In this document: one piece after another, positions 16,311-63,600 of the stretch
How the letters are laid out: each line of letters begins with the position of its first letter
Numbering within the stretch: the first letter of the stretch is position 1
NCBI RefSeq assembly: GCF_001194135.2
Contig: NC_068983.1
Coordinates: forward strand, 67,251,249 to 67,315,248
Origin: Octopus bimaculoides
Taxonomy: Eukaryota
Direction: 5' to 3'
Length of the DNA stretch: 64,000 nucleotides
Position numbers and translations under genes: made by a program
Notes under the pieces: model-generated
Databases searched by the model: none
The model's input: only the letters and a program-made list of their open reading frames with translations
Told to the model about the DNA's origin: nothing

Positions 16311-16530
16311 NNNNNNNNNNNNNNNNNNNNNNNNNNNNNNNNNNNNNNNNNNNNNNNNNNNNNNNNNNNNNNNNNNNNNNNNNNNNNNNNNNNNNNNNNN
16401 NNNNNNNNNNNNNNNNNNNNNNNNNNNNNNNNNNNNNNNNNNNNNNNNNNNNNNNNNNNNNNNNNNNNNNNNNNNNNNNNNNNNNNNNNNNNNNNNNNNN
16501 NNNNNNNNNNNNNNNNNNNNNNNNNNNNNN
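16311..16530. other. assembly gap (220 N) next to a (CA)n run
   Basis: N run. Confidence 1.
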
Positions 16531-24399: not shown

Positions 24400-24745
24400 A
24401 TGGGTCTGCTTTCCATGCTAGCATGGGTTGGACGATTTGACTGAGGACTGGTGAACCAGATGGCTACATCAGGCTCCAATCTGATTTGGCAGAGGTCCTA
24501 CAGCTGGATGCCCTTCTAACGCCAACCACTCCGAGAGTGTAGTGGGTGCTTTTACATGCCACCAGCACGAAGGCCAGTCAGGAGGTACTGGCAACGGCCA
24601 TGCTCGAAATGGTGTATTTTATGTGACACCTGCACAGGAGCCAGTCCAGCGGTACTGGCAACGAACTCGCTCGAATGTCTTTTCACGTGCCAGGAAGGCG
24701 ACGTTGGTAATGATCATGCTCAAATGGTGCTATTTACGTGCCATT
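24400..24745 (-). mobile_element. RTE 3'-tail fragment with an internal tandem duplication of about 66 bp
   Basis: catgctagcatgggttggacg...gatgcccttctaacgccaaccact matches the other RTE tails. Confidence 0.8.
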
Positions 24746-35004: not shown

Positions 35005-36782
35005 CATATATATACATGTTTTGTATCTGGACAACTGCCTGACAAGTGCCTGGCAGACAATTGCTTGACAGACAAATGCAATATTTTTTGTTAAATCTTG
35101 ATATTTTTCCCTTTTTGGATGAAGGCTGATGTCCTACCAGCATTTGGTTGATGATCATGTCATTAAGTACTTGTTCAATCTTCAATACCTGAAGAAAACG
35201 CCAGATATTTAGATAACTTGACATTATATTCACCTGTAAATGGTTATGCCATCCCGTCAAGGAATTAATTATTCGTGGTAAATCATTTCATATGCAGTCA
35301 TACATGTTCCACATAGAAATTGGAAAGAGTGGGTTGCCTCTGTTACACTGTCGTATTCTACCGATATAAGAATCTTCAAGGTAATGAATGATTGAATTTG
35401 CTTCATGGCACAAATTTTCTTGTAATTGCTCATATGCTGTTACAACATTGTCTGCTGGCACAAAAGCCAAGGCCTTTCAATGCTTGGTGGTTCTTTACTT
35501 CAGCAAACTGAGAAAAAATACAGCTTTTAAGTACAGAAAGATTCACCCAAATGACAGATAAAGATAATGTAAAAGTGTCTGCTGGGGAGATATCTATCAG
35601 ACAATTGTCCGTCAGGCTATTGGTCACCGAGCAGTTGACCTAGAACCATATATTACAAAAGATTAAGTAAACAAAGATAGAAATTTTCATTAGGTTTCTA
35701 TTCATATCTACTATGGAATTATCCCTCCAAGAAAATAATAAATATAGAAGATTATTATTATTAGTTAATTTAAACAGTAAATTTTTTTATAACAACTAAT
35801 TTGAATAGATAAGAGTTGTTGTATTGAAAATGTAATTTTTTATATATTTTTTCTTGTATATCAGGAAAATATATATATATAAGTCGAAACAATTTGTTGG
35901 CCTTTTATGGCTTTTATAATTATTCATATAATATTTTGTTGTCATATATTATATTCATAGTATTTAATGTAAAATTGTAATATAAATAAATTATTGGATT
36001 GGCAATAGAATATCTCTATATTTAATTTATCTTTGTATATCATCATCGTCATTTAACGTCCGCTTTCTATGCTGGCATGGGTTGGACGGTTTGACTGAGG
36101 GCTGGCAAGCCAGAAGGCTGTACCAGGCTCCAATCCAATCCAATCCGGCAAAGTTTCTACAGCTGGATGCCCTTCCTAATGCCAACCACTCCGAGAGTGT
36201 AGTGGGTACTTTTTACATGTCACTGGCACAAGTGCCAGTCAGGCAGTACTTGCATCGACCATGCTTGAAAGGTACTTAATACATACCACCAGCACAGGAG
36301 CCAGTCAACTGGCACTAGTACTGGCTTCGACTATGCTCGAATGTGCCACTGGCATGGGTGCTAATCAGGCGGTACTGTCATCGGCCAAAACAATAGTTTC
36401 ACTTGTCTCAACAGGTCTTTGCAAATGCAGTTTATTGCCCAATGATTGAAGGGTACTCTTAAATGGGCGGGTTATGCTGCACTGGCATAGGCCATGGTTA
36501 CGGACTCACTTGGCTCTTCTCAAGCACAGCATATCTCCAAAGGTCTCAGTCATTGCCTCAGTGAGGCCCAATGTTCAACGGTCGTGCTTCACCACCTCAT
36601 CCTAGGTCTTCCTGGGTCTGCCTCTTCCACAGGTTTCCTCTACTGCTAGGGTATGAAACTTTTTCCCACAGCAGTCCTCATCCATACGCAACACATGACC
36701 ATACCAGCGCAGTTGTCTCTCTTCTTGCACACCACATTTGATGCTTCTTCAGTGCAACTTTTCTCTCAGGGCACTTACATAA

Positions 36783-36920: not shown

Positions 36921-39900
36921 ATATATATATAAACTGATGCAAGAATCTAAATTGCTTTCTATCTGTAGGTATGAATGCCAATTCAGGTTCTACAAATTTT
37001 AAAATTTCATCAATCTGAAAATCATTTATTTCCCACATATACTATGTTTATTTCATGCAATATCGTATTTATTCTCTGCAACGCCATCATAAGTGATACA
37101 TTATTTGCATCATGTGGAAAATTTTCCACCAATATTATCCAAATGATATCGCTGTTATATTTACAATTTACCCAAGACTAGGCCTCTGTGCAATGCATCC
37201 CCTACAAAGGTCAAGATCACACCACATAAAAACTTTGCAACACAATTTCTTCACTGCAAATGGGCCTTCTCTTTTCAATGTTATCCCGAAAGAAATTAAA
37301 GTAGAAAAAGGCCCAACAACTTTCAAATGGTACCTGGACAAATTCCTCCAGGAAATACCAGATAAGCCACCTACACCTGGATACATTTCAACCAACAACA
37401 ACTCTTTGCTTGAGTGGCCCATGGTGTCCCAAAACAATTAATTGAAAGACTTTTCGAGGTGGTGGTATTGAGTTAGTCATGGTTTAGACCATTAATGGCT
37501 GAAACCAATCTAAGTTAAGTTATCTAATCTAAGTAATCTGTTTTACAAACTTTTAAAAACAAATTTGAACAAAAGGAGGGACATAGATAATAGAAAATTG
37601 AGCCAGATACTTCACAGTTTCATGTTCAGTGCTGTTTGTTTCTGAGTTCAAATGCTGCAGGATTTAACTGTATCTTTCATCTGTGTGTGTGTGGGAGGGG
37701 GGGGGTTAACTATATAAATGGGAGTAATATATGGGTAAGCTAAGTAACATCTTATTTTTTTACAGTATTCTCGTTTTAGTAATGTTTAATAAGCTAACAT
37801 ATTTTTTCTATCGTCAGTGTAGTTTGTTTTTTTTTTTCCTTTATAGCAATGAAAAATTGCTTTACTTTCTAATACCTTGTAATAATTCTGTTTATGTATG
37901 TGTATGTTTTTATTTATTAATTTGTGTATCATTTTGTTTGTATTTGTTTTGTTCTACATTTCTTTTTGATCTTTGTTCTTATCTTCTTCAGAAATATGAA
38001 GCCATTGAAGTCTGCCAGAAAAGTTTGTTCCATATTGAACTAACGAAATCAGTCGCAGATCCTGAATTTGGCTTCCGAGTGGAGGCAGAATTATCAGATC
38101 ACTATGATAAGGATGATGAATTACAAGTTTATGTATGTGAGATCAAACCAGGAGGTTTAGCTCATCGGAAAGGTCATTAGAATTTCATCTTTTATTATTA
38201 GAAATATATATTTGTGTGTGCATGTAATATTAGCCCTTTCTTAGTCAGCACATGAAAGCTATGTTAATGCAATGGCTTTGTGTCATTCTTCACAAGCAAA
38301 TCTTGTTAATAAGAAATAATTGTCAATATAAAACATTTCGAATAGCTTCTGCAAATCAAAGACTAAAACATTTATTATAGAAAAAAATTTTCAGACTAAT
38401 TTCATCTAATTTTAGAGATGAAAGATCATGTGAAATGGGAGAAAATCAAGATCAAAAGTGCTGATGGATTAACTTAAAACTGAAAAATATCACAGATGCA
38501 AATAACCAACAGATAATTCTATCAAAATGCTGGATATATACATGCATATATATATATATATATATATATATANNNNNNNNNNNNNNNNNNNNNNNNNNNN
38601 NNATATATATATGTGTGTGTGTGTGTGTGTATTTTTTTCAATGTGTATAAATAACATGGAAAAAATAAATAGTTACCAGGGTAGCAAAAGTTCACATAAG
38701 TGCCAAGGATATTATACCCTACATATAAAGGTATAAATTCCAGGGTTAAGTAAAATGTCTTTGTATAACAAAGATAAATTAAGAAATGGAATTAAACGCA
38801 GGTGTTATTCAAATCTTCATACTTCCGATATATGTTTCGAAGAAAACATTGATATTATTCCGGATGGAATAAAAACTATGTAAAACAATGTAATCATCTC
38901 GTCAGGGAAAAAAGAGAAATAAAAAAACACATCAGTAAGCCATTTTAACTGATTACCACATATATGATGAACGGGAATGCTGGCAAGTTATTTTCTAAAA
39001 TAACGTTAATAGATTTAATGTCAAAGGCAATTTAGAGAATTGCCTTTGACCTTAAATCTATTAACAGCATTGTCTGTCACTGAACAGTCTGAAATGCAAA
39101 TGGCAGTCTCTTTCACAAAAGCTGCACTTGTGACTTGTTCCAGTACTGTTTAAGTTGTTGTTTTTCCTTGGTCTTGTCTCTTCAGTATAGGGTGTTCAAA
39201 GGGACTCAGTCCTGGGTGATATGATATGGAAGACAGGTTATTGCTTATGCAGCATGTTTTCCCTCTCCACACTACTGATGCAGTCAAAGGAACAGCTCAG
39301 CCATTACAATTTCACACTAGCGTCATCATAGGAGTTGCCAGAATGAGGTTGTAGACAACATTGGACTGCCTCTAAGACTCCAACTCCCAATTTTTTCTCA
39401 GGCTTTATTCTCAAAGTCTTTTCCACAGCTGGGTATGGCCACAAGGTAGTGGGGGTTTGGAATCAGAGTTTTCCTTCTCCTAGATGGGCTGCCAGCCCCT
39501 GAGCTAATGAGCTCTATCTGCCCTAACTGACTTGCTAATTAACCTCACCTGAGACCAGACAGGTGTCACTATTTCAGATCAGAGTAGACCTGGGAACAAT
39601 AGTGGCTAAGAGGTGGTTCCACAGCCCTCAAAACCTTGGGATTCCCAAACTAAGACCCCACTACAGTGTTATCTTGCCTTTTACTTTTTTACTTTTTCTT
39701 ATCTTAAACAGTCATAGTGTATTTTCAGAGTTAGTGTGAAGAGTTTGAAGAGACTCCAGCAACTGAATTAGCTGTAAATTTAATTGCATTTGGAAATAAT
39801 GGAAAGTGATTACCTGTTGTCATTGGATGTATTTCAGTCTCAGGCTTCACAACGATATAAAGTAGATTTACTTGGCAGTGAACATCTTTCAAAGTATCCA

Positions 39901-43569: not shown

Positions 43570-46500
43570 ATAAATAATGTTTGTTGCCACTTCAACATGG
43601 CTGTTCCATATGGAACAATGTTACCACTCTCTTTTAACCCCAGGTGAACCCATGATATGGTAAACTTTTGGCTGCAATTTCTAGCAGGTCAAGCAGCCAC
43701 AAAAATTCTATGTATTTGTAGTACATGTGATGGCTTGATTGTAATATGTTTGATTGATGTGGTGCTCAGTATACATTTCTTGAGATGTCTAACATCTTTG
43801 TTTTGGTGTTGATAATCTCAACACATAATAGACACATACAGTAGGGATATAGGTAGAGTGTATTTAATGTGATTTCAGAGACACCCTTATGGTAGGATGT
43901 CATTTCATGTAAAATGAGAATATTTTTCCAGTATGGAATTATCTTCCACACTTGATTTGTGTTTCCATGAATCATATAATTTTGATTGAACTTGCTGTGG
44001 TGTTTGTTTAGCCACAGATCAGGCCTATTCTACTCATGGTTAGAAGTTTTCCAACATTCCCAATTTTTGCTTCTTCTCAAAAATATGGAACTACATTATT
44101 TAATATGTATTTCCCATTTTGAAGTACATTATTCTGTGATATAGAAGCTATTTGAGTGTCTACATAAAGCTTTACTTATAGGCAAATTTATAATCATGAA
44201 ATATAGCCTTATTGACAGATACTTCTTTCTAACAATATAGGAAATACCAGGCTTTTAAAGGCACTACTCAGTTATTAACAGCTATACTCTGAAAAAGTAT
44301 ATACCCTCTGGAACATAGGTTATCAGTCTTTATGTGATGAATATGTCTTCAGTTTTGTATTATAACTGTACAGTTAAGAGGGAAAGTTGTTTGTATTTTG
44401 AGAATTATATCTATTCAAAGCTGAGACATTAAATCCTCTAAGACTGAGCTTTTAAATTCATTTGCAAATAATAACTGCTAAATTCCACTCTAGGATATTC
44501 TTTAACCAATGTTTTCATTATCATAGTTTAATAAGGCAGCAAGCTGGCAGAATCATTAGCACACCAGGCAAAATGCTTAACGCATTTTGTCTGTCTTTAC
44601 ATTCCGAGTTCAAATTCCACTGAGATTGACTTTCCCTTCCATCCTTTCGGGGTTAATAAAATAAGTATCAGTTGAGCACTGGGGTCACTGTAATCAACTA
44701 AGCTCCTCCCCTGTAATTGCTGGCCTTGTGCCAAAATTTGGAATTATTGTTATAGTTTAGTCAAGAGGAAGGAAATGTGCCTATGACTTCCATCGACTCA
44801 GTGAGGTCGATTCCATTAGTGTGCTTTTTCAGTAGTTTTAAGTTGATAGCTGCAAGTAAAGCATGTGCAGGGAGGGATTTCCAGAAAATGTTCTGAGGAT
44901 AAAGGACTTTGCTATGTTGAGGATATATCCTCACTGGGAGTAATGCTTAGTAATGGTGAGGCCCAGCATTTGAAGAGTTTGTGAGGGTCCTAGTTGCATC
45001 TTGTTCTTGTTTTGGAAAGTGAGACGTTATAATGCTTTGTGATTGTGTCTTTTTACTATTAATAGAAACAAGATTGGTATAGCTCCATTGGAAGATATTT
45101 TTAAGGTCTCTATTTATGGAGCCATTGCAGATTTGGTTTGAGGTGTCTAGCTTGCCTGTAGACACTTGGGCGCTGAAGGTTAGAGGGAATGTAAAAAGGT
45201 ATCATCTGTGTAGGGGTGAGTTGTGCTTGAGGTGATAGCATGTAAGTCAGTGATGTGTATAGCATGACAAACTCAAATCCTAGAGTACTCTAGAGTACAT
45301 AGAATGTGGGTCAAAAAATCTCCATCACCATATGTTCTGAGAACAATCTATGAATCCAAAAGACAAGCAATAAATGAAGTCCATAAGTGACCAGTTTTAT
45401 TAAGAGACTCACCTGGTGGATATGATCAAAAGCTTTACTAATGGGGAAAGCAATAGCACTACTTTCACCAAATTTCTTGAGCCACTGATGAGTGATATGA
45501 GAGAGTATGTCTTGAGTAGATCCATATGGATGAACATTAAGAAGGAGAGAGGTTACAAGCTCTTGGCAAATTGAGAGTAATAGGAAATACATTATCAGAA
45601 GAGATGGCCTTGTTCGCTTGATGCAAGTGGAGGTACTTTCAAAATTGGTATCTGTGTGTGTATGTGTATGATGAAATCATTGTTGAGTTAAAAGAGATAT
45701 TTTGAAGGAGATTTACCTGATGTATGCAGTATGTATTTGTATGTAAAGTGACATTGTCTGTAGGAATACTGCTCACACAACCATTATGGTTCAATAGTGC
45801 TGCAAGGGGAAATTCTGCAAAGTTATTAATGATTCATGTAGCATGGGATCAAAAAGATAAGTACAGTAGGAAGCATCCATCATGGCTTTTGTGAATTTGA
45901 TACACAATTACCTATTTCTGAGGAACAGAAATGTTGTGGTAGCAATAGAATTCAGAGAGGAGGCTGTATGTCTACAGGCAAGAAACTGTAGTGTTTAGTG
46001 CACTTCTTTTGCTAGTCAGTATGCTTTTGAATGCTGTCTAGAATATTTGTGGATTCCTAAATACTTTATTTTATACCAAAATATATAGAAAAATTGCATT
46101 TAAGATTTTAAGCATTTTAAACAACATTCTGTAGGTAATAGATTTCACATTTCTTTCAAGTTCACTTAAAATATTTTACTGAAAATGAAACTGATCTTAC
46201 ATGGTGTACCAAGAAAAAAATGGAAATACATTTTACAGTATATACAAAAAAACATACAAATTGTCTGTTTTTAATACATGCACCAAGAAAGATAAGTTTC
46301 TGGAATAGTTGAATTTGATATGTATGTTAGTTTTTAGCATTTATTTCTCATGATTTCTGGTGAAATTGGTTATACCACGATACAGTTGTTCTAATTTTAT
46401 AAATTTTGTTCAGAATACTGAGCAGGTGACTGCAATGTGCCGTCTTCCTAATGAACCTTACCAGTTTGGAGAAGCTCCTTCCAGACCCTTATCTGAAGCA

Positions 46501-49500
46501 CAGAAGTTAAGGAAGGTCATCATGGAACTTCTGGAAACAGAGCGTGCCTATGTGAAGGTAATATTGATAGATTTTGAAATATTTGAATTTGTAACTTGGA
46601 ATGCCTCATCTATAATCAATTAAAGCAAACTAAATATAAGTGCTTCTCATCCATTAAGAAAATTGCATCAGGCTTTTGATTGCAACTTCTAATTCAATCA
46701 TTGCTATTATCTTGATTACAAATAAATAGTTGACTATGTCTTCAGAATAACTTGTAAAAATAGTAAGTGTAATGCATTTAAATTGGCAAACCTCAGTTAA
46801 CAGAACTGGAATTAATCATGTTCAGCTACAACAATGCTGAATTTGAAATAGCAGGTTTCATAATAGCCACAGCTAAAAAGTACTCATCTCATCATCATCA
46901 TCATTTAATGCCCATCTTCCATGCATGCATTGGTAGGACAGTTAACAGGAGCTGGACAGGTAGATGACTATCCCAGACTACTGCGTCTGTTTTGGCAAGA
47001 TTTTTATGGCTGGATGCCCTTCCTAATACTGACCACTCTGCACAGTAGACTCAGTGCTTTTTACATGGCACTATCACAGGCAAGATTAGTTCTGGCATCA
47101 TTTTTACAGCTGGATGCCTTTCTAAATGCCAACCACTTTACAGTGTAGATTGGATGTTTTTTACATGGCACCAGCCCTGACAGAGTCATCAAGTAACTTG
47201 CAAGACAAAGAATTTTGAGAGGGGGCAGGGACATTTGAGGATGGAACTTGTGCCAGAAGATGAAAGGTTAGATTGGGACGGAGAGACAGAAACAGCTGTC
47301 TTGTTATAACAGTGGGCGCATTGAAGGAGGTGATCTGGTGTCAGATGATGAATGGTTAGAGCATGGCAGAGAAACAGGTGTCTTGCTATAGAGGAGGTAT
47401 ATGGTTACCCAGCAAGAAAGAGAAAGTTGTGTTAGTGAGATAATGTCACAAATACAACAGATGCACCTTAATTTTTCTAACAAATAGTTTAATTGCAAAG
47501 TATCATCATAAATTAAATCTTAGAAAAAGTTTTGATTTATACTTCAATTAAATTGTTTCTTGTGGGAAATGATTTGAGAAGACATGTTAAATTTATTTGA
47601 CTTGTAACTGAAAAACTGATATCATCATAAATGCTGATCAATTATTTACCAACCACTTACATGTGACTTTGGTCTAAAGTGGAGTTTTTTTTTAATGACT
47701 AGTTATGTGCATGATAGTAAAAAAAAAATGTAAAGTTAATTCCAATTGTAAAGCATTGCTTATAAAAACACTATTTCCTTTCATTTTATTGTATACCACT
47801 TATATCATATCTGTACAGGACCTCAATGTGTTGATTGAGCGGTATTTAAATCCTCTGAAGGCAGAGACACTCTTGACATCGGATGAGATAATGCAGTTGT
47901 TTGGTAATATCCAGGAGATTGTTCAATTTCAGGAACAATTTCTGCAAAGTTTAGAAGAAGCCATAGAGCTAGGGGGTGACTTCTTCACCCTTGATGACCC
48001 AAAGAAATTTCGGGTAAGTGAACCTTAAAACTAAAACCAAATGTGTTGTCATTTTCAGTAATGTTTTTGTTTGGTTTTCAAAAATACATTATTGTTTATT
48101 GCAACAAAGAACAGCAATTAATTAAACTTACCTTTCAGAAATATTGTTTCTGCAGTACACCATTTGCTTTTTGCTACCATTTATCTTTCAGCCTAACAAC
48201 ATTTTTCAACAAATTCATCAGTCTGCTAGTAATATGTGAGATACAATAGCCAACATGGGCATTTACTGTTGAACTTAACTAAAAATTACACAATATTATG
48301 AAATTAAATTTTTTTAGTGGGATGTTGTTTAGACAAATTAACCCTCTAAAATTTGATAGCTCACACAAACGTTATCATGCTTCAAAAAGTACTCATAAAA
48401 TACATTGGGTTTTAAGGATCATTGGTATCAACAATATAATGAATATACTGTATTTTGTACTTTATCATAAGTAGGTTTATGTTTTCTTTCTAAATTTTAG
48501 CATTAGATCTTATGAGCCTGTCGTTTTCTTTGTTCCTCATATTTGATAGCTTTTTCAAGGTAAAATTTTAGTATATCCAGACCAGTGTGTTTCTTTTATT
48601 CTGAGCAAAAATAGGGATGCAACCATAACTTTATGCTTAATAGAAAAAGAAAACAGATTCATTAACTATTTCCTATCAGAGTATTATATCACTAATCTAT
48701 TTTGTATATAAAAGATGTATTTAAAAAAGGGTACAAAAACATACTATTTATTATTCGTCATTGACTGAAAAATATTTTAAAGAAATTAAACATTTACTAT
48801 CAGTCTTAAAAAGAAAGGTAATTTTAATTAGAGACAATATGGAATTGTCCACCTTAAAACATTTTATCTACATGAACTCCAGCTATGCCTACTAAATTGT
48901 TGCTATTTGTTTTACCCCAAAACTTATTTTAGTTATGGAGATGACTAAAAGTATTTTTATGATAGCTTCTACTACCTAAAAAATGCTGAGAGATCTCTGT
49001 ATGATTTCATATTTGCATATTAATTGCTTGTGTAAAATAAGGAATCACTTCTACTTTGCCTATACACCAATACTTATATATCTTATTACAAAGACACAGT
49101 ACAAAACTGTGGGAGCAAGGAACTATTTATTTCAACACTACTATGTATATATAATACGATTAAAGTTTGAATCTTTCAAAATGCTGCATTGCAAAAGACT
49201 ATTGTAAATAATAACAAGATGTCTTTCCCCTAATCTGTCAAGTAGGAAATGATTGGTTAGTATTTAAATGAAAATTGCTTTAATATTTCATTTCACTATT
49301 TTCTTCCATTTCTTACCAATTCCTTAAAATCTTCACAAAAATAGATGCATGATATTGTTTGAAAAAATATTTGTTTTCATTCATTTTAATATTGTAATAT
49401 AAAAGAAAGCCCTCTCCCCTCTCCTCCAGCTTACTGGTTGCTTTATAAATAAAATGTATAAAAAAACTTTATAGGCTGTTGCAGGATTCTCTTTCACTAG

Positions 49501-52500
49501 CTGTGAATAATTCTACAATGAGTAAAAGTTATTCATTGTTTAAGAACAAAGTGTTTTCTCATTATTACCTCCACTGATACTTTCTAGGTGTGTATACAGC
49601 TAAAAATCTGCAGAGGTATTCAAGTATTGCTGACAGTTCACCACACACATACAGAACTGGAGAGAGCAAGATTATTTACAGTAAAATATACTACACTGCA
49701 TACTCAGAATGACAATAAATGTTGGCCTTTGTTTGAGCAGTGAAATCAGTGAGGCACAGCTACATCTACTTCATGCTGTCCACTGTTGTAATGAACAGCT
49801 ATTTGCCATTGGTATAAATTGTCCAAATAAATAATTAATTCTGGGATAGTCATTTTTATGAGGTTCCCTATTTTTATGAATTTGTGTATATGTTATGGAC
49901 TAATTAAACTATCATCTTTATTATTACCATCATCTCAATTTTGAAGAGTTTAGAATAGTATTAACATTTGGTTTATAGCAAAGTACAGTAGATTATATTT
50001 TCAAAACTATACAAAATATATAATAAAATATCTTTCAAAATATATAGCAATTAGAGTGAAATAGTTAAAATTAGTTTATTGTGCAAATTTGTGTTTTTAA
50101 AATATCTCGTATGATTTCTGTACGAGATTGGATTCTCAGTGAAAAGATCTTTTGAAATTTGAGCATTTCACCTATCACATAGAAAAGTTCTTAGTGAACA
50201 ATTCGCTAATATTAAGTTTTGCCCATGTTGACTTAATGAAATGAAAGATAAAACCATTTTCACTTTTGCTCATTTGCTTTTTATTTATATTCTGGGTTGA
50301 TTTTGTCTGCATTTCCCCTCATTCTTAATTTTACCTCATTGATCAAATTGTTTTTATTTTCAAAAAGATAAAACTGTTTTACATTGTTCATTCATTATTT
50401 TCTTTCTGCTGTGTGTTTGTTCTACTAGGATGAAGAACTCAGGGTATGTACTAACATTATTAACTGTTGCATAAAAACAGTGACATTCGCATGGATTTTA
50501 CTCTTTGTTTATCATTTTATTCTTTACCTCACTTATTAACCTCATGTGAAACCCATCGTTGACAGTTTATTTTTCTCTGCTTGTTTGCGGCTACATTTTA
50601 AGAACTGTCTTTCTAGCAATGTACTGCGCTGAGATTGTTTTTACTGCTGTGACTACTGTTGTGGCTGCCATGTTTAGTGTACTTTTAACATATAACATCA
50701 ACAATTAGAGCATTTCTTATTTGAAGTTTCATCTACATTAAGTACTTATAAAGAAATACCACCTTTTATCTCCTCTCACTTCTCTGGCTGTACTTGTCTT
50801 CATATATAAAATAGATTTCTTTCATTCAAAATGCTTTGTATTCATTAGAAATATGTTTGTGTGTCTTTTTTTTTTACTTTAAAAAGTAATAGAATAGTTG
50901 TCTCTTTTTTTTTTTCATTTCATCATTGTGGTGTCTAAGCATTTTTGATTTAGTTTTTTTTTTTTTTCTAATAAGAATAACTTTAAGATTTTGCCATTAA
51001 AGTTAGTTTTTATTTATAATTTTTGCCAATTTAATGCTAAATGTTTACTATTTGTAGGTGCCCTGTTTATTCAATACTTAATCTAATGACTTCTTGTTTA
51101 AAAGTTACTGAAATTATTATCAGAAGATAAGGTTGCTTTTATACTGACCTCTTAAAGAATACACATTTTTATTAACTTTTATAGAACTGTAATCTCAAAG
51201 CTGCCAATATGAATAGTTATAACATTTTAGATATAATATTTTAAATACAATTTAATGTTCATTACAATTATTGCCAAGATTTATCGCCAATAAAATAGAA
51301 TTAACAAGGTGTTAATCAGAAGAATTAGATTCAATATTCCTCTGTGGTATAATATTAAAAATCATATGCATTTTCAGTAATAGTGATTAGGGTTTGTATT
51401 TTTTTTTTTTTTTTTTTGAAACCATAATAAATTTACATTATTAGCTATTAAACTGATAAGAAAAATAACTTTAACATTGAAAAATGTCATTATGGATAAC
51501 TGATTTCTGTTGGAGATGTTTGCTATATGCTAATATATTATAGTATCAAACTACTAAATTTCTAACAAATGTAGATAGTAATTTGACAAGCATGAAAGTC
51601 TGATAGAATTTACATTTAGTAAATTTCAGCTTTATTACCCCATAAAAATTAAACTTTTCTTAAATTGTTGTCTTTTAGTTAATTTATATTGACATGGCAA
51701 AATTTATCTGCAAAGCTTGACATTAACTAAAATGTAGATGCTACTACACAACTATTAAGTTATTAAAAATATTAATAAGATACATAGGTTATTTTTTCTT
51801 TCATCATTTCATTTAATATTATGCATATTCTTTATAGGATTATTAAGATGTGTCATTACATTGTCTAATGCAGTATTTAGAAATTAAGAAGACTGTGAAA
51901 AGGCTATACATAATTTCCATTAAAATTTTTCAGAAAATTGAGCACCAAAACTCAATCTACAAAATCTGTATAAAAAATCTAATCTACTAACAAACTAACA
52001 ATTAGAAACTATCAAGCAGTTCTTAGTATAAGCATAAATCTAATCTACTAACAAAATAATAATTAGAAAAGGAGTTTTAATCTCAGTTGGTCAAAGTTTT
52101 TCGACCCACTATATTGGTTCTTGAGTATCTTACAGTTAAAATCTTAGAAGTCCTTTATTTGGATTTTATGTAGAATGTATTCAAGTCAATAATTTTAGTT
52201 AGAATGTACTCATTTAATTCACTACCACTTAAAGAAATGCATTGTTTCCACAATGTCCCACTTCACCCATCATATCATCATAATTATCACTATCATTATT
52301 CATGATTTAATTCTGATTTTCAATCTTGAGTAGTGTCATTTGCTGAATTTTTATAGCTGAAATCATTTTCTAAAGAGGTTTCCAATAACTCTTACCTTCA
52401 TATAATAGTTAGGTACATATTCAGCTACAGGTAACCACTACAGATTTCATTAAAAAATTAAGTTTCAGGGTAGTATGTTTTATTAAGGGACCAGATATGA

Positions 52501-56900: not shown

Positions 56901-59900
56901 ATTTCAAAAAAAAAATTAAAACCATTTAAAATGCTTTTAATTTATTGATTAACCCTTTCGTTACTATATTTCTGACCAAAATACACCCCTCATGAGTTTC
57001 AATTAAATTCTAAAATAATCATGAATTTAGACTTGTCTCATTAAACACCTGTAACTTTTTTATTTATCAACATATTAATGTGATATTTGGAACATAATTA
57101 AAGAAAGGGTTCTTAATCAATTCTATTGCATAATTTTTGTCTCAAAGTTCTCCACGTACTGGGAGGGGGGGGGGTACTGCTAGTGTCGCTCACATGTAAA
57201 TATTGGTTCAGCTTCACAAATCGTACTCGTTCATAATACTGGAAATATATTCATCGCCAAAAAGTTCCTGATCGCTCCAGTAATTTGTTATTCTGGGTAA
57301 CTATCAAATACCCATAATAATATTTATGGCAAAAAATGCCCGTATTTCATCTACAGTTGCAGGAAACCGCAAGCTATCTTTTTTTTCTGGTTTGTTTACA
57401 TTGTGCGTAACGGTTTGTTTCCGCAGTAATCATTTCAAACAAGCATGAAAAAGAAGTCTAAAGGTTTCGCTTCCTGAGAAAGACTATGAGTAGATGCTGT
57501 TTCCTCAGAAAAATTGTTAATAAAAACGTTTTTTTAAGTTTTTACTCCATTCTGGTGTAATATCATCATCGCTATCGCCGTCGTTGCTTTCAGAATCGCT
57601 GATTTCAGTTTCGGATACAGAAATATCCGATTTATTATCGTTCATCCCGTGCTTTTGTAGCTCATTCATTCTTTTCTTCGATGTCTCCATATCTTCTGTT
57701 GAAAAACCTTCAAATTCGGAATCACTGCTTGATAGCATGTAACTCCTCTCCATCTTCAAAGTTGAAAAAAATTAACGCCGCAAAAAATGTGGAAAAAAAT
57801 CTTCCAAAATTCACTGAGTTCAAATATCACGCGAAACAATGTCGGAGACAATAACTTAACTGTTTGCAAAGTAAAATCAGGTGTTTTAACGAATGTACTA
57901 ACGAGATTTGGGTTCAAATATACATTTAAATAACAATGGGTACGCTCGGCCGGCTACGGCCGGGTTAGTCTTATGAACCAAAAAATTTTTCGGCCGGCTT
58001 AGTAACGAAAGGGTTAATGCTTAGGTGTCATTCTAGGAAAACTGAAGAGAGATATTGAGTAGGTCTTTATGCCATCATAGGATAATTTTTGAAAGGTTGT
58101 CAATTTGCAGTTAGTCAATTGTGTCACTGGAAAAATGAAGGCAATGCAACAAAAGCTATTTGATTAGCAGAAAGGAACTGATGTCAAAGTTTTCATTAAT
58201 CATGATCTATTATCTCTCTGTTACAGTGACTATATTAAAAAATCTTAGGATTGTTTACACTTTAGCTAACTTTTAAAAGCTATAGAAGAGATAAGTCTTT
58301 ACTACCCATTACTTATGCTATGCCTTCAAAGAGAAGAAATTTCAATTCTCATTTCTTTTGCATGTTAGTCAATTGATAGATTTATCATCATCATCATCAT
58401 AATTTTTATCATCATTTTAGTNNNNNNNNNNNNNNNNNNNNNNNNNNNNNNNNNNNNNNNNNNNNNNNNNNNNNNNNNNNNNNNNNNNNNNNNNNNNNNN
58501 NNNNNNNNNNNNNNNNNNNNNNNNNNNNNNNNNNNNNNNNNNNNNNNNNNNNNNNNNNNNNNNNNNNNNNNNNNNNNNNNNNNNNNNNNNNNGAATATAC
58601 ATTTTTTCGATGAGTCATTAAAATATTATCTGTGCTATTAACAGGAACAATATTTATGCACCTCTTTTTACACAAAATCACACTTGCACAATCTAAATAA
58701 GTAATTACACACAAATATTACTTCACAAAAAACATATATGTATGTAATTCATGTATACATCTGTATTGTGTAGGTTGTTTGTCATCTCATGTATATAAAA
58801 CATAGCCAACCAAAGGCCTGAATAATTAGAAAGAACAAAGATTTTTTCAAATATGTTGCTTTTGTTTTCTATTACAGCGTGTTCTGTTTTCTCTGGGTGG
58901 CTCTTTTCTGTATTATGCCAACCATTTCAAGGTGTACAGTTCCTTCTGTGCTAGTCATTCAAGGTCAGCCAAATATTTGGACAGGAACAATTTGATCAAC
59001 TATTCAAAAATGTACTTAAGTACTAAAGTGGCTTGTTAAATTTTATGGTGGAGGAAAGTCCAACCTTATTTATTGACCAGAATGTACTGGCTTACCAACA
59101 GACTAATTACCTCAGACAACTAAAGTAAAAGTTGTTCAGAAAAATATTGTCTATTGATATTCAATATTGCTGAAATAGTTTGTATTTATAAAGGACAGTA
59201 TCAAAGAGGAAATTTTAAACATGTCTCTCTCATAGCTATCAGATATTCAGATATTTCATGGCTCAGTCCTTCTTTCTCTTGTTGTTTTGCTAACTGTTAT
59301 TCTCGTAGTTTCAAAACAACATACTGAAAAGAGGAATATAGTTAGTAAAAGAACATCCTCTTGATTAATTAACTTCTATTTGAAACATCAGACATTTCTG
59401 TCCTTGGCTCTAAGAATTTGTAACTTGCCTTTGATATTTTTTCACATCATAGGATAATTTTTGAAAGGTTGTCAATTTGCAGTTAGTCAATTGTNNNNNN
59501 NNNNNNNNNNNNNNNNNNNNNNNNNNNNNNNNNNNNNNNNNNNNNNNNNNNNNNNNNNNNNNNNNNNNNNNNNNNNNNNNNNNNNNNNNNNNNNGCCAAC
59601 CATTTCAAGGTGTACAGTTCCTTCTGTGCTAGTCATTCAAGGTCGCAAAAGATCCTCAACCCAGGTAAGTGATGGATATTGTGAGATAATTTGAAAGATT
59701 ACTCCACTTCAACATATGTATATGCTTTACCATATACTCATAACACACGTTTATATAATTATATATGATATACATGTACTGCTTTAAATCTACTTAAAGC
59801 ACACTATACATATATGTGTTCTGTAACATTCATTAGTCTCACAATACCATTGGATTTGTCCAAATTCAACCTCTCCTACTATCACCTTTATTACAAGCCA

Positions 59901-62596
59901 CCACCCTTTAACTCACTTTCTTCTTTGTCTTACCATCATTTATCATTACTATTACTCATCTTTCAGTCTCTCTATAACATTACTCTTTTCTCTATCACTC
60001 ATTGTTAATATCCATCACTTTTGTTGTCTCCTAACACTGAATCCTTTTAATTTTTATTACTCTCTCTCTCCCTCCCTCCCCCCTTCTCTCTCTCTTTCTT
60101 CAATTGGCCTTCTTCATATCAGATCGTATCCCTCTTCTTTCCCTCCCCTCTATCACTTTCAAGCCCTGGTTTTCTCTCCTTTATCACTCTTCTATTCACC
60201 TCTTGATCATGTTGCCTTGATCAAACAGAAACAATATTTTGTAGAGAGTACTCTTTAGTGTTACTAAGAACACAACCTTTCCATACGATGTCATGACAAA
60301 GTGCTTCCAGTACACATTGTAAAATTGTTAGCATTAGAAAGATCAATCAATATAAAAGCAGTGTGCTTGATTCATCTAGGTGAGCAGAAAATCTAGAACA
60401 GAACTGACTTGGACCACAATGACCTGATCAAACTATGCCAGCATTGAAAAGTGATGAAGTGAAGATGATAAAGATGAAGAAGAGAATTATATGCATGGTC
60501 ATTATCATCATCGTTTAATATCTACTTTTCATGCTGGCATGAGTTGGTTGACTTATCATAGTCTGAATCAATGTATATGCAAAGTTACTGTCCTTCTAGA
60601 TGGCTCAGAGAAGCATGTCTGGCTTATATATTTTGTTTGGCATGGTTTCTGAAGCTGAATGTTCTTCATAGAACCAATCATTTACAGAGTACACTGGGAA
60701 CATTTAATCCTAGGAGGCTGTCATGTTCTCCACTGGTCAAGACTAAAGAGTACTTTCAGCTTTGTAACTGCTCAGACATTTTACAGAAAGTACTGAGTGT
60801 ACTTTATTATGGTACCAGCACAAATGAGATTCTTCTATGTGACCAACAGAGTAGTTGGAAGAGAGTATGAGTATAAAAGAAGAACTAGGGTGAGAGGTGG
60901 AAAGAAGCAAAAATATGATGTACAATACAAAGTGATCCAGAGTCATTATACCATTATTGTCTCTCCCCTTCCACAGTATGGAAGGAGAAAGACAGTAATA
61001 GTATTGAGAGTTGGTAACAGCAGAAGGTATTGAGAGAGAAAGAGAGGAAGACTCTGCTGGTAACTACATGTTTGTTGGTAAGAGAGTGTGACAGATGTCA
61101 GTAATGAATCAGTTGGGAGAGAAAGAATGTTGGCTGGCACTATAGAAATGTAATGCTACCAGAAAAAGCATGAGTAATGAATAGTCAAAAAGGTAATAGT
61201 AGGAAAGTGTGGGACATCTGAGGGAGTGATGGCTGGTAGTACTGGAAGATGAATTAGAGGGATTTTTTTCAGATACCACTAGATCCAATACAGTCTCTTG
61301 TTACTCATTAATTTGGAAGAAACAGAGGATGGTTTTAATGATATGGATAGTGGTAGTTAGGGAGTGAGTATGATTAGAGCTAATGTTTTCCCTGATGATA
61401 TGAGTAGCATGGTGCGGTGAATAGGCAAGGAGGTGATAGTGAAAGATAGGAAAGTATTGAATAGACAAAAAAGAGCTGCAGAAGGAGAGCAGCAGGTACA
61501 AAATTGGCAAAACTCCCAGATAATTTATATATATATATATATATGAAATAACCCAGCCTCCATCATTATTCCCATCTTGATATCGAAATATTGATATTTT
61601 AATTTAGAAATAAAATCTCTGCCTGTTTATGTCTGGTCACTTTACCAGTATAAATTATTGATATTTGTTGAGCCAACAAGGGAACTGCTATATAGTCTCT
61701 TAACTTATAGCCAAATCTCTCTCTCTCAAATTGCATTCTGCTATCATAAAGAAAGAATGATATATTGCAGAACATAGTTTTTTTAGCACAGGAAAAAATT
61801 GTCAGAATAGCCATGGTTACAATACCATTGGTCATAAGTTTGCTCCTTTAAGACAAATCTAGGGCAAAAAACAAAAAAAAGATTATTTGTCATCAGAGAG
61901 AGTGTTTTACCACTATATCATGGCCAGGTTGGTGAACTAACTTACTGATGATGCCTTACAAGTTTGCATCCATTTACAAATTTAATATCTATTCTTGATT
62001 AGTTACTCTAATGTTTCTTGTTTCTCACTTTCATATAAAAGAAAAAGTTCAATACATTGTGCTGCATTCTGACATTATAAACATTTCATTTTAGACGCTA
62101 ATGCAGCCTTGAAGGAATTTCTATTGGCAAGAAACCCCAAGCAACAACACTCTTGCACTTTAGAGTCATTTTTAATTAAACCGATCCAGCGAATTTTGAA
62201 ATATCCACTTCTATTACAACAGCTGTGCCAACTGACTGATCCAGAGACAGACGAACATTACCATCTCTCAGGTATTCACTCTTAAAGATCTCCTTTTCAC
62301 AGTTTATTGCAAAACTAAAATGATGTTATCACCTCATCATTTTTTCCTTATTGTTTGCATTAAATATTTTGGTTTTCAAAATGCCTTATGTCAAAAACTA
62401 AGATTAAAATATCAGGAAGAAAGAAGAGGAAGATTAGAAAAATAGCTTCATATATTTTTATTTTCTTGCAGAGGCCCTTCGTGGAATGGAAGCTGTAGCA
62501 GAACATATCAATGAGATGCAGAAAATTTATGAGGAGTATGGTTACTCTTTCGATGAACTATCTCGTATGTACAAAGAACATCATCCACACAATAAA
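33780..62596 (+). CDS. sif: still life (SIF)/TIAM1-2 family Rac guanine nucleotide exchange factor, partial multi-exon CDS (RBD-PDZ-DH); gene extends beyond both window edges
   Basis: Exons 33780-33938, 37992-38172, 41507-41764, 42967-43055, 46414-46557, 47819-48013, 58878-(gap)-59664, 62095-62271 and 62472-62596 have AG/GT boundaries and matching phases (0,0,1,1,0,0,0,1,1,0); together 1437 nt. Motifs [60 protein letters not shown] and [13 protein letters not shown] match SIF/TIAM1 DH sequences as I recall them. RBD-PDZ-DH order is diagnostic of the family. Confidence 0.95.
33976..34165 (-). mobile_element. SINE family B, about 37 bp downstream of the RBD exon, followed by (AAT)n at 34166-34202
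   Basis: Homologous to 4470-4655. Confidence 0.75.
34806..34965 (+). mobile_element. SINE family A, 5' half, truncated at its (TA)n tract
   Basis: Similar to 1925-2085. Confidence 0.7.
35040..35650 (-). mobile_element. MULE (Mutator-like) transposase remnant, C-terminal catalytic region
   Basis: Minus strand reads [16 protein letters not shown]...YLEDSYIGR...[12 protein letters not shown], then [12 protein letters not shown]...[13 protein letters not shown], matching the MULE motifs LAF.P, YF..T.I, LFP...WN, RTNN..E.WH and P.IW.F. Frameshifted; no TIRs found. Confidence 0.78.
36040..36780 (-). mobile_element. RTE-clade LINE 3' end (RT C-terminus plus about 480-bp 3' UTR)
   Basis: atcatcatcgtcatttaacgtccgc tail; 36510-36766 is the reverse complement of sequence like 6880-7130. 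Confidence 0.88.
36781..36930. repeat. compound (TG)n/(TA)n microsatellite
   Basis: Read directly. Confidence 0.95.
37040..37445 (+). mobile_element. 3' end of a CR1-superfamily-like non-LTR retrotransposon
   Basis: [13 protein letters not shown]...[19 protein letters not shown]...NSL, a common C-terminal motif of this LINE group; clade assignment is from recall. Confidence 0.65.
37992..38172 (+). CDS. sif: sif/TIAM exon: end of RBD and first half of PDZ ([10 protein letters not shown]...[10 protein letters not shown]...[19 protein letters not shown])
   Basis: atcttcttcag acceptor; 181 nt; aaag|gtcatt donor, phase 1; EFGF carboxylate-binding loop. Confidence 0.9.
38573..38602. other. assembly gap (30 N) within (TA)n
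   Basis: N run. Confidence 1.
39005..39065. repeat. near-perfect inverted repeat: 28-bp arms, one mismatch, 5-nt loop
   Basis: GTTAATAGATTTAATGTCAAAGGCAATT-tagag-AATTGCCTTTGACCTTAAATCTATTAAC. Confidence 0.92.
40241..40697 (+). mobile_element. young tRNA-derived SINE, family C, with six tandem 14-bp repeats between its Pol III boxes
   Basis: A-box TGGCCCAATGG (40253-40263); B-box GGTTTCGATTCC (about 40366-40377); TSD ATGGTAAGA at 40232-40240 and 40698-40706; CpG-rich. Confidence 0.85.
41507..41764 (+). CDS. sif: sif/TIAM exon: second half of PDZ ([28 protein letters not shown]) plus linker
   Basis: ttgcag acceptor, 258 nt, ccag|gtaata donor, phase 1-1; GDEI..ING PDZ signature. Confidence 0.92.
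42967..43055 (+). CDS. sif: sif/TIAM exon: proline-rich linker ([30 protein letters not shown])
   Basis: acatag acceptor, 89 nt, aag|gtagtt donor; converts phase 1 to phase 0 as the flanking exons require. Confidence 0.82.
44532..44745 (+). mobile_element. SINE family B
   Basis: agctggcagaatcattagc head, gagttcaaattcc B-box and central domain. Confidence 0.8.
44830..45650 (-). mobile_element. CR1/L2-type LINE reverse transcriptase fragment
   Basis: GSTQDIL...[28 protein letters not shown]; [10 protein letters not shown] (YADD-like); [23 protein letters not shown]. Confidence 0.8.
46414..46557 (+). CDS. sif: sif/TIAM exon: [10 protein letters not shown]...start of DH domain ([18 protein letters not shown])
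   Basis: ttgttcag acceptor, 144 nt, aag|gtaata donor; DH conserved region 1. Confidence 0.93.
46890..47460 (-). mobile_element. RTE 3' UTR/tail fragment
   Basis: (CAT)n tail and colinearity with 21530-21990. Confidence 0.78.
47819..48013 (+). CDS. sif: sif/TIAM exon: DH domain ([13 protein letters not shown]...[22 protein letters not shown]...KKFR)
   Basis: tgtacag acceptor, 195 nt, cgg|gtaagt donor, phase 0-0. Confidence 0.94.
50429..50443 (+). CDS. sif: candidate 15-nt alternative microexon (DEELR) within the DH domain
   Basis: Pyrimidine-rich tract ending ctactag, then GATGAAGAACTCAGG, then agg|gtatgt. Frame-preserving between two phase-0 junctions. No transcript evidence available. Confidence 0.55.
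53395..53780 (-). mobile_element. RTE 3' UTR/tail fragment
   Basis: Colinear with 21530-21950. Confidence 0.72.
54060..54462 (-). mobile_element. RTE tail fragment (about 54060-54250) followed by a SINE family A head (about 54325-54462)
   Basis: ttctacagctggatgaccttcc; ggcttctttcagtttc...gtagtgggactgaacc. Confidence 0.65.
54655..54860 (-). mobile_element. SINE family B
   Basis: Homologous to 44532-44745. Confidence 0.75.
56953..58013 (-). mobile_element. piggyBac internal-deletion derivative, 1061 bp
   Basis: TTAA TSD at 56949-56952 and 58014-58017; perfect 14-bp TIRs CCCTTTCGTTACTA. The minus strand from 57759 to about 57175 encodes an acidic N-terminus and PGBD4-like motifs ([40 protein letters not shown]) across frameshifts and stops. 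The catalytic DDD region is absent. Confidence 0.93.
58422..58592. other. assembly gap (171 N)
   Basis: N run. Confidence 1.
58878..58966 (+). CDS. sif: sif/TIAM DH exon, 5' part ([30 protein letters not shown]); this copy lacks the exon 3' end and runs to TAA at 59037-59039
   Basis: attacag acceptor; matches the TIAM1-like motif [13 protein letters not shown]; diverges from the downstream copy after 58966. Confidence 0.8.
59495..59594. other. assembly gap (100 N, probably a placeholder size)
   Basis: N run flanked on each side by 50 nt identical to upstream sequence. Confidence 1.
59595..59664 (+). CDS. sif: sif/TIAM DH exon, 3' part ([23 protein letters not shown]) with true donor; its 5' part would lie in the 100-N gap
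   Basis: First 50 nt identical to 58917-58966; ends ccag|gtaagt in phase 1, matching the next exon. Confidence 0.88.
59810..60480 (+). mobile_element. decayed RTE 3' UTR/tail remnant
   Basis: CT-rich block, then ...atgccagcattgaaaagtgatg...gatga tail. Confidence 0.6.
60505..61520 (-). mobile_element. decayed RTE 3' UTR/tail remnant, tail-to-tail with the preceding copy
   Basis: cattatcatcatcgtttaatatctacttttcatgctggcatg tail followed by a GA-rich block. Confidence 0.65.
62095..62271 (+). CDS. sif: sif/TIAM exon: DH conserved region 3 ([36 protein letters not shown])
   Basis: ttttag acceptor, 177 nt, tcag|gtattc donor, phase 1-1. Confidence 0.95.
62472..62596 (+). CDS. sif: sif/TIAM exon: DH C-terminal helix ([24 protein letters not shown]...HNK)
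   Basis: ttcttgcag acceptor, 125 nt, aaa|gtaagt donor. Confidence 0.94.
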
Positions 62597-63052: not shown

Positions 63053-63600
63053 TAGGTACAGGAGTGACCATGTGGTAAGTAGCTTGCTTACCAACCACAT
63101 GGTTCCGGGTTCAGTCCCACTGTGTGGCACCCTGAGCAAGTGTCTTCTACTATAGCCTCAGGCTGCTCAAAGCCTTGTGGGTGGATTTGGTAGATGGAAA
63201 CTGAAAGAAGCTCACCGTATATATATATATATATNNNNNNNNNNNNNNNNNNNNNNNNNNNNNNNNNNNNNNNNNNNNNNNNNNNNNNNNNNNNNNNNNN
63301 NNNNNNNNNNNNNNNNNNNNNNNNNNNNNNNNNNNNNNNNNNNNNNNNNNNNNNNNNNNNNNNNNNNNNNNNNNNNNNNNNNNNNNNNNNNNNNNNNNNN
63401 NNNNNNNNNNNNNNNNNNNNNNNNNNNNNNNNNNNNNNNNNNNNNNNTGTGTTTACATACTTAGCGGTTCAAGAAAAGAAATTGATAGAATAAGTACTAG
63501 GCTTACAAAGAATAAGTCCTGTGGTTGATTTGCTCAACTAAAGGTGGTGCTCCAGCATGGCCCCAGTCAAATGACTGAAACAAATAAAAGAATAAAAGAA
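63053..63600 (+). mobile_element. SINE family A containing a 213-N gap (63235-63447) at its internal microsatellite
   Basis: Head and tail colinear with 1920-2320. Confidence 0.87.

Follow-up and report, generated by a model that had tools for sequence, protein, structure and literature searches.

Within one intron of a Rac exchange factor gene, the 64-kb stretch of DNA analysed here (the window) contains an open 15-nt segment flanked by AG and GT, predicted to be a microexon of the catalytic DH domain. The locus raises the question of whether this segment is a genuine coding exon and, if so, whether its use is constitutive or regulated, through which signals, and with what effect on the protein.

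The DH domain encoded in the window was matched to Pfam RhoGEF over profile positions 1-180 of 180 (E 6.9e-47), and its best match in the PDB was the DH-PH structure of mouse TIAM1 (1FOE, E 8.7e-79, whole domain), followed by P-Rex2 (3.7e-20). Upstream of the DH exons, on the same + strand, lie an RBD exon at ~33.8 kb (E 1.7e-6, above the cut-off) and PDZ exons at ~38.0 and ~41.5 kb (E 7.7e-10). Given this succession of RBD, PDZ and complete RhoGEF domain along the + strand, and TIAM1 as the best solved relative, the host gene is, on its predicted RBD-PDZ-DH architecture, a TIAM/SIF-type Rac GEF, with the same domain order as TIAM1/TIAM2 and SIF. The TIAM-type C-terminal PH domain falls at the edge of the window or past it; at a related locus (L005), a PH_Tiam1 match was observed downstream. 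The DH exons were placed as follows:

46414-46557, + strand: DH exon E1, carrying CR1
47819-48013, + strand: DH exon E2, upstream of the candidate, covering the end of α1 and α2/CR2, ending DDPKKFR, with the donor CGG followed by gtaagt, phase 0
58878-58966, + strand: first copy of DH exon E3, downstream of the candidate, starting RVLFSLGG and providing the acceptor for the microexon junction
59595-59664, + strand: incomplete second copy of E3, on the far side of an N gap, with the conserved donor CCCAG followed by gtaagt
62095-62271, + strand: DH exon E4, carrying CR3
62472-62596, + strand: DH exon E5, carrying α6

E3 is thus duplicated around an assembly gap: beyond 58966 the first copy differs from all relatives, the second matches the relatives' ..SHS[RK].QK[IV]LNPG, and the true exon end is at 59664, before gtaagt. 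The donor implied for this exon in the original prediction is doubtful for that reason.

The candidate and its flanks comprise the following features:

50400-50428, + strand: 3' splice region, a pyrimidine-rich tract with ttctttctgctgtgtgtttgttctact and a UGUGUGU run
50429-50443, + strand: 15-nt microexon, GATGAAGAACTCAGG, encoding DEELR, phase 0 to phase 0, by direct reading and translation
50444-50449, + strand: 5' splice site GTATGT, the exon ending AGG before it
50449-50464, + strand: TACTAAC-N5-TAAC (TACTAAC 50449-50455, TAAC 50461-50464), matching the bipartite QKI/STAR element
50489-50493, + strand: GCATG, a core of the Rbfox type at +46 from the donor, weak evidence by itself

The coordinates originally given for the exon, its splice sites and the motifs were each reproduced by re-reading the window. 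The acceptor AG is at 50427-50428, directly preceded by ttctttctgctgtgtgtttgttctact, and the 3' splice region holds a single UGC at 50407-50409, at -22 from the exon start. At the donor, GG followed by GTATGT is common to 7 of 11 orthologues (described below). AG and GT flanks, an open frame, a length that is a multiple of 3 and phase-0 junctions are all present, and translation confirmed a symmetric exon, in phase 0 on both sides, between ..KKFR (48013) and RVLFSLGG.. (58878). The surrounding intron measures 10.9 kb in total, with 2.4 kb before the microexon and about 8.4 kb after it. The length of the AG-exclusion zone was considered as a discriminator and dropped, the nearest AG upstream of the microexon acceptor being 61 nt off, no further than at constitutive E2 (65 nt).

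Two rival readings are that an open 15-mer stands between AG and GT by chance and is never spliced, or that the sequence is conserved but non-coding, for instance an enhancer or a splicing decoy; the intron alone contains 21 stop-free AG-N15-GT sites. It also holds 286 AG..GT candidates of 3-51 nt that are in frame and free of stops, and by a crude splice-site score the microexon ranks 1 of these. Among 884 stop-free AG-N15-GT sites in 351 kb, one scores at least 16 against DEELR, and it lies inside a real PDZ coding exon; DDELQ at 38112 was rejected as a neutral false positive, as it sits within the PDZ coding exon. The true microexon site was the top match in every intron by a wide margin, and the expected chance yield of such an exon is about 0.01-0.04 per intron.

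Related loci were reached by searching a collection of 5.8 billion proteins with the spliced ..KKFRDEELRRVLFS.. query; all 27 matches were prokaryote-style ORF calls running from exon into intron, and these served as entry points to related genomic contigs. Accessions for the loci compared include ERZ26222911, ERZ25084518, ERZ25069859, ERZ26859052, ERZ27297344, ERR14368248, SRR26215655 and GCA_013332715.1. Orthologous exons were then located by pattern and translation scans of the homologous introns; blastn-short with the microexon ±130 nt against the related loci returned low-complexity noise only. Twelve further loci (about 10-11 independent lineages) carry, in the homologous intron, an exon with AG/GT flanks: 15 nt encoding [DE]-x-[DE]-[LI]-R at 11 of them, as DLELR (L025), DDDLR (L003, L010), DRELR (L016), EKDLR (L018), DADLR (L004/5, L027), DEDIR (L006), EEDLR (L009) and EGDLR (L007), and an 18-nt variant, EQNLLR, at L013, its length differing by a multiple of 3. 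In codons 1, 3, 4 and 5, every second position is invariant among the orthologues and third positions vary freely, while first-position changes are limited to Leu CTN/TTG (with CTC, TTG, CTA and CTT all seen), one Ile ATT (L006) and Arg AGG/CGG. Apart from the microexon, the introns could not be aligned between loci; in a blastn comparison of L003 with L010, E2, E3 and the microexon were the sole alignable segments.

A joint chance probability below 1e-10 for recurrence in about 11 lineages, together with substitutions clustered at wobble and synonymous Leu/Arg first positions and a length variant that preserves the frame, leaves the chance or non-coding reading very unlikely, and an Rfam scan of the window intron gave no family match. 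From its conservation in the homologous intron, 50429-50443 is judged a genuine, evolutionarily old protein-coding microexon, as the original prediction had proposed in outline.

The depth of conservation was gauged from protein divergence only. In the exon-bearing loci, the neighbouring exon is 57-69% identical to that of the window (57% in L009), nearly the divergence of an insect-like sequence (60%), and the earlier suggestion that the exon may be lineage-specific does not survive this comparison. The originally suggested lack of an equivalent in fly SIF and TIAM1 agrees with the loci recovered here: in an insect-like homologue (L020) no intron interrupts the microexon site and the exon is missing, and two vertebrate TIAM1-like loci (L021/22 and L023/24) share the phase-0 intron position, between ..F[RK] and [RK]VLF.., but have no such exon within it.

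For the position of the insertion within the domain, a sequence alignment to 1FOE was combined with helix names taken from another DH domain. Without the microexon, the encoded domain aligns collinearly with TIAM1 (1FOE); with it, the domain gains 5 residues, an insertion that crystallised TIAM1 lacks. In this alignment the extra residues fall in the loop joining DH α2 (CR2) to α3, directly at the N-terminus of α3. Inclusion between ..KKFR and RVLFSLGG.. would add five residues of the form acidic-x-acidic-Leu-Arg. A hydrophobic residue followed by Arg closes the upstream exon (FR) as well as the microexon (LR), so that α3 would probably be preceded by the same pair in both isoforms; on inclusion, the α2-α3 loop would become longer and more acidic, with helix register unchanged. 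The GTPase surface of DH domains is formed by CR1, CR3 and parts of α3 and α6, and dimerisation of the Tiam DH domain has been reported (PMC2892021). We infer that the insertion lies away from the CR1/CR3 GTPase surface. Because that surface comprises CR1, CR3 and parts of α3/α6, a direct effect on catalysis is not the likeliest consequence of an insertion in the α2(CR2)-α3 loop, which weakens the original proposal that it could tune Rac GEF activity; contacts within the molecule or with partners, on the side facing away from Rac, would more probably be affected than the catalytic surface.

Whether every transcript carries these residues is a separate matter. The explanation that best covers the whole, and one held with moderate confidence, is of an old coding TIAM/SIF microexon, most likely a regulated cassette, inserted in the α2-α3 loop. 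Splicing would retain the cassette in a subset of cell types, probably neurons, and omit it elsewhere. The signs of alternative use are indirect. At the end of E2, ..F[RK] is conserved in exon-bearing and exon-lacking lineages alike, as expected if the skipped junction is also used, and homologues without the insertion include the crystallised, active TIAM1. Exons of ~15 nt usually need dedicated enhancers and are typically regulated.

Under a constitutive alternative, the five residues would be present in every TIAM/SIF mRNA of these lineages and would have been lost in vertebrates and in insects, in the latter together with the intron. The good splice signals (the first rank noted above), the strong constraint on the peptide, the lack of a consistent regulatory-motif set common across lineages and an AG-exclusion zone that is ordinary compared with E2 would all fit such a history. 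Set against it are the size of the exon, 15 nt between introns of 2.4 and ~8.4 kb, the continued conservation of the FR end of E2, as in exon-less homologues, and, at the level of flanking sequence, a conserved UGC-rich flank in one clade and triple UGCAUG in another. Constitutive use is rather unlikely on this evidence, and regulated use is retained as the preferred reading in what follows.

The flanking motifs were compared among lineages. In the 60 nt upstream of the exon, UGC occurs once in the window, at a background of ~0.7 per 60 nt, 3-5 times in L003, L013, L016 and L018, and not at all in L004, L006 and L009. The TGC about 20 nt upstream, originally likened to those of eMIC exons, is present at -22, but as a single copy it equals the background rate. 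L016 and L018 still align over 32 nt of the UGC-rich sequence upstream of the microexon, but over just 2-3 nt beyond constitutive E2. Downstream, UGCAUG occurs three times in L004/L005 (+23, +45 and +70) and once in L013 (+84), and GCAUG occurs at +46 in the window and at +95 and +117 in L006; GCAUG is absent in 6 of 10 lineages, and a single GCAUG within 150 nt is expected at ~15-20% of sites by chance. Both motifs, UGC and GCAUG, are inconsistent from lineage to lineage.

These features resemble two known systems in part. Like the neural microexons dependent on eMIC (Srrm234/SRRM3/SRRM4), the exon is short (15 nt, within the ≤27 nt of that class), keeps the frame, is flanked by long introns, and would add a few charged residues in a loop adjoining a structured signalling domain. 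The cis features reported for eMIC exons are UGC close to the 3' splice site and pyrimidine-rich tracts (PMC8797185); pyrimidine-rich tracts are shared here, and UGC near the 3' splice site is shared in several lineages, whereas the window has one copy, at background, and three lineages have none. Microexon programmes of the eMIC type are reported to be almost completely rewired between phyla (PMC8797185), in contrast to a TIAM/SIF microexon kept across quite divergent genomes. With Rbfox-enhanced cassette exons, the locus shares downstream UGCAUG or GCAUG in L004/L005, L013, the window and L006, but the motif is found in 4 of 10 lineages only, and the single GCAUG is of the kind expected by chance at the rate given above.

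Control by a Quaking/HOW (STAR) protein acting on ACUAAC-N5-UAAC, 6 nt into the downstream intron, was the mechanism suggested by the description of the motif as a complete Quaking/STAR element. The sequence match stands: the segment at 50449-50464 fits NACUAAY-N1-20-UAAY exactly, and across the window a motif of this kind lies within 30 nt of only ~1.4% (core) or ~0.9% (bipartite) of GTRNG sites. Exon inclusion is associated with QKI sites on the downstream side. The functional part of the claim fared less well, as ACTAAY is missing from the 130 nt that follow the donor in all 10 orthologues examined, and the only nearby cases, branch-point-like ACTAAC at -38 in L006 and at about -30 in L025, lie upstream. 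Base composition accounts for the frequency of the motif: ACTAAY is slightly under-represented in the window (85 observed against 115 expected), 41 copies fall on its + strand, 16 of them with TAAY no more than 20 nt downstream, and ~40% of ACTAAY cores would gain a TAAY half-site by chance at the 32% GC of the window. The motif was moreover picked post hoc among many possible RNA-binding-protein motifs, and the region ~6 nt from a donor is paired with or occupied by U1/U6, which the site overlaps. A functional role for ACUAAC-N5-UAAC at the microexon donor is doubtful, and control of inclusion by a Quaking/HOW protein improbable. For the regulated cassette, recognition would instead proceed through the strong pyrimidine tract, the donor and lineage-variable intronic enhancers.

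A more specific form of the regulated reading is put forward tentatively, as a possibility. It describes the exon as an ancient switch (at least pan-molluscan, possibly lophotrochozoan or older), neuron-enriched and of eMIC/Rbfox type, in which an acidic D-x-E-L-R turn at the α2(CR2)-α3 boundary, on the face opposite the Rac-binding site, where the reported Tiam DH dimerisation takes place, would act as a toggle on self-association, partner binding or autoinhibition and not on catalysis, with independent losses in insects and vertebrate TIAM1. If true, it would be among the few microexons kept across very distant invertebrate lineages, unlike the near-complete rewiring reported for such programmes.

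Among the papers searched, none links a microexon with TIAM1, TIAM2 or sif at this site, and in the Drosophila eMIC supplement the sif entry, among the matches listed, is a 3.6-kb exon only. Gene predictors routinely overlook exons of 15 nt. This one may already be among the isoforms annotated automatically for sequenced molluscs, and it can be sought in the intron between ..FR and RVLF.. with the pattern YAG, then GAN NNN GAN (C/T/A)TN (A/C)GG, then GT. Given the reported rewiring of microexon programmes between phyla, an exon kept across such divergent genomes would be useful as a counter-example or calibration point for the age of invertebrate microexons. TIAM/SIF proteins act as Rac activators in synapses and growing neurites, and five residues inserted into their catalytic domain, conserved and probably regulated, would offer a simple, testable handle on the tuning of Rac between cell types in molluscs and their relatives.

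The candidate microexon lies in a TIAM/SIF-type Rac GEF gene with the + strand order RBD, PDZ and complete DH domain, the last consisting of five exons (E1-E5) and the candidate between E2 and E3. RBD, PDZ and a full-length RhoGEF domain were all confirmed by Pfam, and the nearest solved structure to the DH domain is TIAM1 DH-PH of 1FOE (TIAM1-Rac1 complex, E 8.7e-79). The microexon sequence and coordinates of the original prediction were all reproduced on direct reading and translation.

Features of the gene in the window
~33.8 kb, + strand, RBD exon
~38.0 and ~41.5 kb, + strand, PDZ exons
46414-46557, + strand, DH exon E1
47819-48013, + strand, DH exon E2, ending ..DDPKKFR/gtaagt in phase 0
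50407-50409, + strand, single TGC, -22 relative to the microexon start
50427-50428, + strand, acceptor ..ttctttctgctgtgtgtttgttctactAG
50429-50443, + strand, microexon GATGAAGAACTCAGG, encoding DEELR
50444-50449, + strand, microexon donor GTATGT
50449-50455, + strand, TACTAAC
50461-50464, + strand, TAAC
from 58878, + strand, DH exon E3, starting with RVLFSLGG
62095-62271, + strand, DH exon E4
62472-62596, + strand, DH exon E5
16311-16530, 38573-38602, 58422-58592, 59495-59594 and 63235-63447, N gaps

The window has a GC content of 32%, several assembly gaps, numerous CA/TA microsatellites, and transposon-type ORFs, some reverse-transcriptase-like, inside introns of the gene (5650-6970, 24480-24770, 36000-36740; for example ..FGFVPGRSTTDAIFLVRQLQ.. 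at ~5.7 kb). E3 is doubled around assembly gaps (58073-59664), with 58917-58966 identical to 59595-59644 and 59445-59494 identical to 58073-58122 (50 nt each); the first copy diverges from all relatives past ..CASHSR, and the conserved SQKILNP(G)/gtaagt is found only in the second. The doubling probably arose as an artefact of scaffolding, with overlaps of 50 nt, or else as a true tandem duplication, and the originally predicted E3 donor (58963) is probably wrong.

The product lacking the 15 nt is collinear with TIAM1 (..VDQFK/KVLFSLGG..), and the product containing them is five residues longer. Stop-free AG-N15-GT sites number 21 in the 10.9-kb host intron, where 286 AG..GT candidates of 3-51 nt are in frame and free of stops; on the bare pattern, the 15-nt element is not above chance in the window. 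Scoring with a crude splice-site matrix (used for ranking alone) placed the microexon first of the 286, which suggests a real exon and is not decisive. The segment 50444-50480 also reads as donor GTATGT, then TACTAAC (yeast-type branch-point consensus) and ..aaaaacAG 26 nt further on; as a 37-nt mini-intron it would be below typical animal intron size and put a TGA in frame, and it is probably meaningless.

Genomic DNA of relatives was reached via protein-database matches, which are exon-plus-intron read-through ORFs on eukaryotic contigs of metagenome/run assemblies. Every relative reaching far enough past the ..F(R/K) exon, insect-like and vertebrate-like ones excepted, has one short exon with canonical flanks, 15 nt long throughout except in L013, and in contigs that include the RVLFSLGG exon it lies between E2 and that exon, always closer to the upstream one.

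Orthologous microexons in comparison loci (locus, peptide, position)
L025, DLELR, 1160
L003, DDDLR, 11326
L010 (= L011, L012), DDDLR, 2461
L016, DRELR, 2352
L018, EKDLR, 10483
L004, DADLR, 11475
L005, DADLR, 11288
L027, DADLR, 2369
L006, DEDIR, 13449
L009, EEDLR, 11655
L007 (= L008, L014), EGDLR, 1309
L013, EQNLLR, 18 nt, GAACAGAATTTACTGAGG, 1117-1134

The L013 exon, apparently 18 nt, would shrink to 12 nt with the inner AG as acceptor (a length variant, multiple of three); it has lost the position-3 acidic residue and kept L-R and the GTATGT donor.

In a background scan, all stop-free AG-N15-GT sites were scored against DEELR with BLOSUM62, and the true site was the best match in each intron (score 11-20, second best ≤6); only one of 884 background sites (351 kb) scored ≥16, and it sits within a real PDZ coding exon. 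The expected chance yield was ~0.006-0.04 per intron, which gives a joint probability on the order of 1e-11 for six introns taken as independent. Substitutions across the orthologues follow a coding pattern: all second positions of codons 1, 3, 4 and 5 are invariant, first-position changes in these codons are limited to Leu (CTN/TTG and, in L006, an Ile ATT) and Arg (AGG/CGG), with third positions free to vary and codon 2 unconstrained (E, L, D, R, K, A, G). By blastn of L003 against L010, across 6-10 kb, only E2, E3 and 26 nt around the microexon were alignable. From these comparisons we infer that the microexon is real and under protein-level selection, and that the element is no exon at all is very improbable.

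The insect-like TIAM/SIF homologue L020 (1031-1370) has E2 and E3 fused, with the microexon-hosting intron missing, and reads ..EQFKNILFSIGSAF.. straight through. The vertebrate TIAM1-like pairs L021/22 and L023/24 share the phase-0 intron (..QFK/KVLF..) and have no comparable exon; in a further homologue, P0001, the intron is only 60 nt. Since E2 identity to the window is 57-69% for exon-bearing loci (57% for L009) and 60% for the insect-like locus (TIAM1, 49%), the microexon is not lineage-specific in the sense first proposed.

A UGC had been taken as a cue for eMIC-dependent splicing; the window has one in 60 nt, the background rate, and enrichment is confined to some other lineages (3-5 in L003, L013, L016 and L018; zero in L004, L006 and L009). 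Between L016 and L018, alignment runs 32 nt into the UGC-rich flank, but only 2-3 nt past constitutive E2, a hint that this clade has a splicing enhancer under constraint; cis features reported for eMIC-dependent exons match this flank (PMC8797185). These two related species also share a ~90-nt block (76% identity; L016 3250-3337, L018 11594-11679) in the intron between microexon and E3, containing CAAATGTCA(G/A)AA(T/C)TTTGATTGGC (CCAAT-box-like GATTGG) and GGAGGATCCAGT and no obvious splice sites, which may be a regulatory element, alternative promoter or shared repeat. Three UGCAUG copies follow the DADLR microexon in L004 (11490-11570) and L005 (11303-11383), at +23, +45 and +70, a classical Rbfox-enhancer arrangement. 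Both loci were obtained from one sample and show 85-94% identity, introns included; they could be haplotypes, paralogues of recent origin or sister species. Downstream UGCAUG occurs once in L013; GCAUG lies at +46 in the window and twice in L006 (+95, +117). The motifs do not indicate one regulator common to all lineages.

The + strand of the window has 41 copies of ACTAAY, 16 of them with TAAY ≤20 nt downstream, and the motif is somewhat under-represented over both strands (85 observed, 115 expected). Since 1.4% of GTRNG sites in the window have the core within ≤30 nt and 0.9% the bipartite form, the motif beside the microexon donor, spotted post hoc, is mildly unusual. ACTAAY was found within 130 nt downstream of the microexon in none of the 10 orthologues examined; nearby copies are upstream only and branch-point-like (-38 in L006; ~-30 in L025, read from the flank). 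The motif of the proposed Quaking/STAR element is present in the window, and its function is unsupported.

By alignment with TIAM1, the insertion falls between the CR2/α2 helix and the α3 helix. In DH domains generally, the GTPase surface comprises CR1 (α1), CR3 (α5) and parts of α3 and α6, one passage naming the C-terminal portion of α3 within the overlapping interaction surface (PMC2892021). The insertion adjoins the N-terminus of α3 and is therefore probably remote from Rac, leaving the suggested tuning of Rac GEF activity doubtful. With F-R at the end of E2 and L-R at that of the microexon, hydrophobic-Arg would precede α3 in both isoforms, which fits both junctions being in use. Alternative use would further be argued by the small size and long flanking introns, working homologues lacking the microexon, the E2 FR end retained in exon-bearing lineages, and clade-specific conserved flanks and motifs. 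We lean moderately towards a regulated cassette and hold constitutive inclusion to be rather unlikely.

What survives of the original prediction is the exon; lineage specificity does not, and its Quaking, UGC and catalytic arguments are unsupported or doubtful. In the literature searched, no description was found of a microexon at the corresponding position of TIAM1, TIAM2 or sif. By analogy, it behaves like conserved microexons that keep the reading frame and modify signalling domains, and since the rewiring of microexon programmes between phyla is reported to be nearly complete (PMC8797185), a well-conserved invertebrate microexon has some value.
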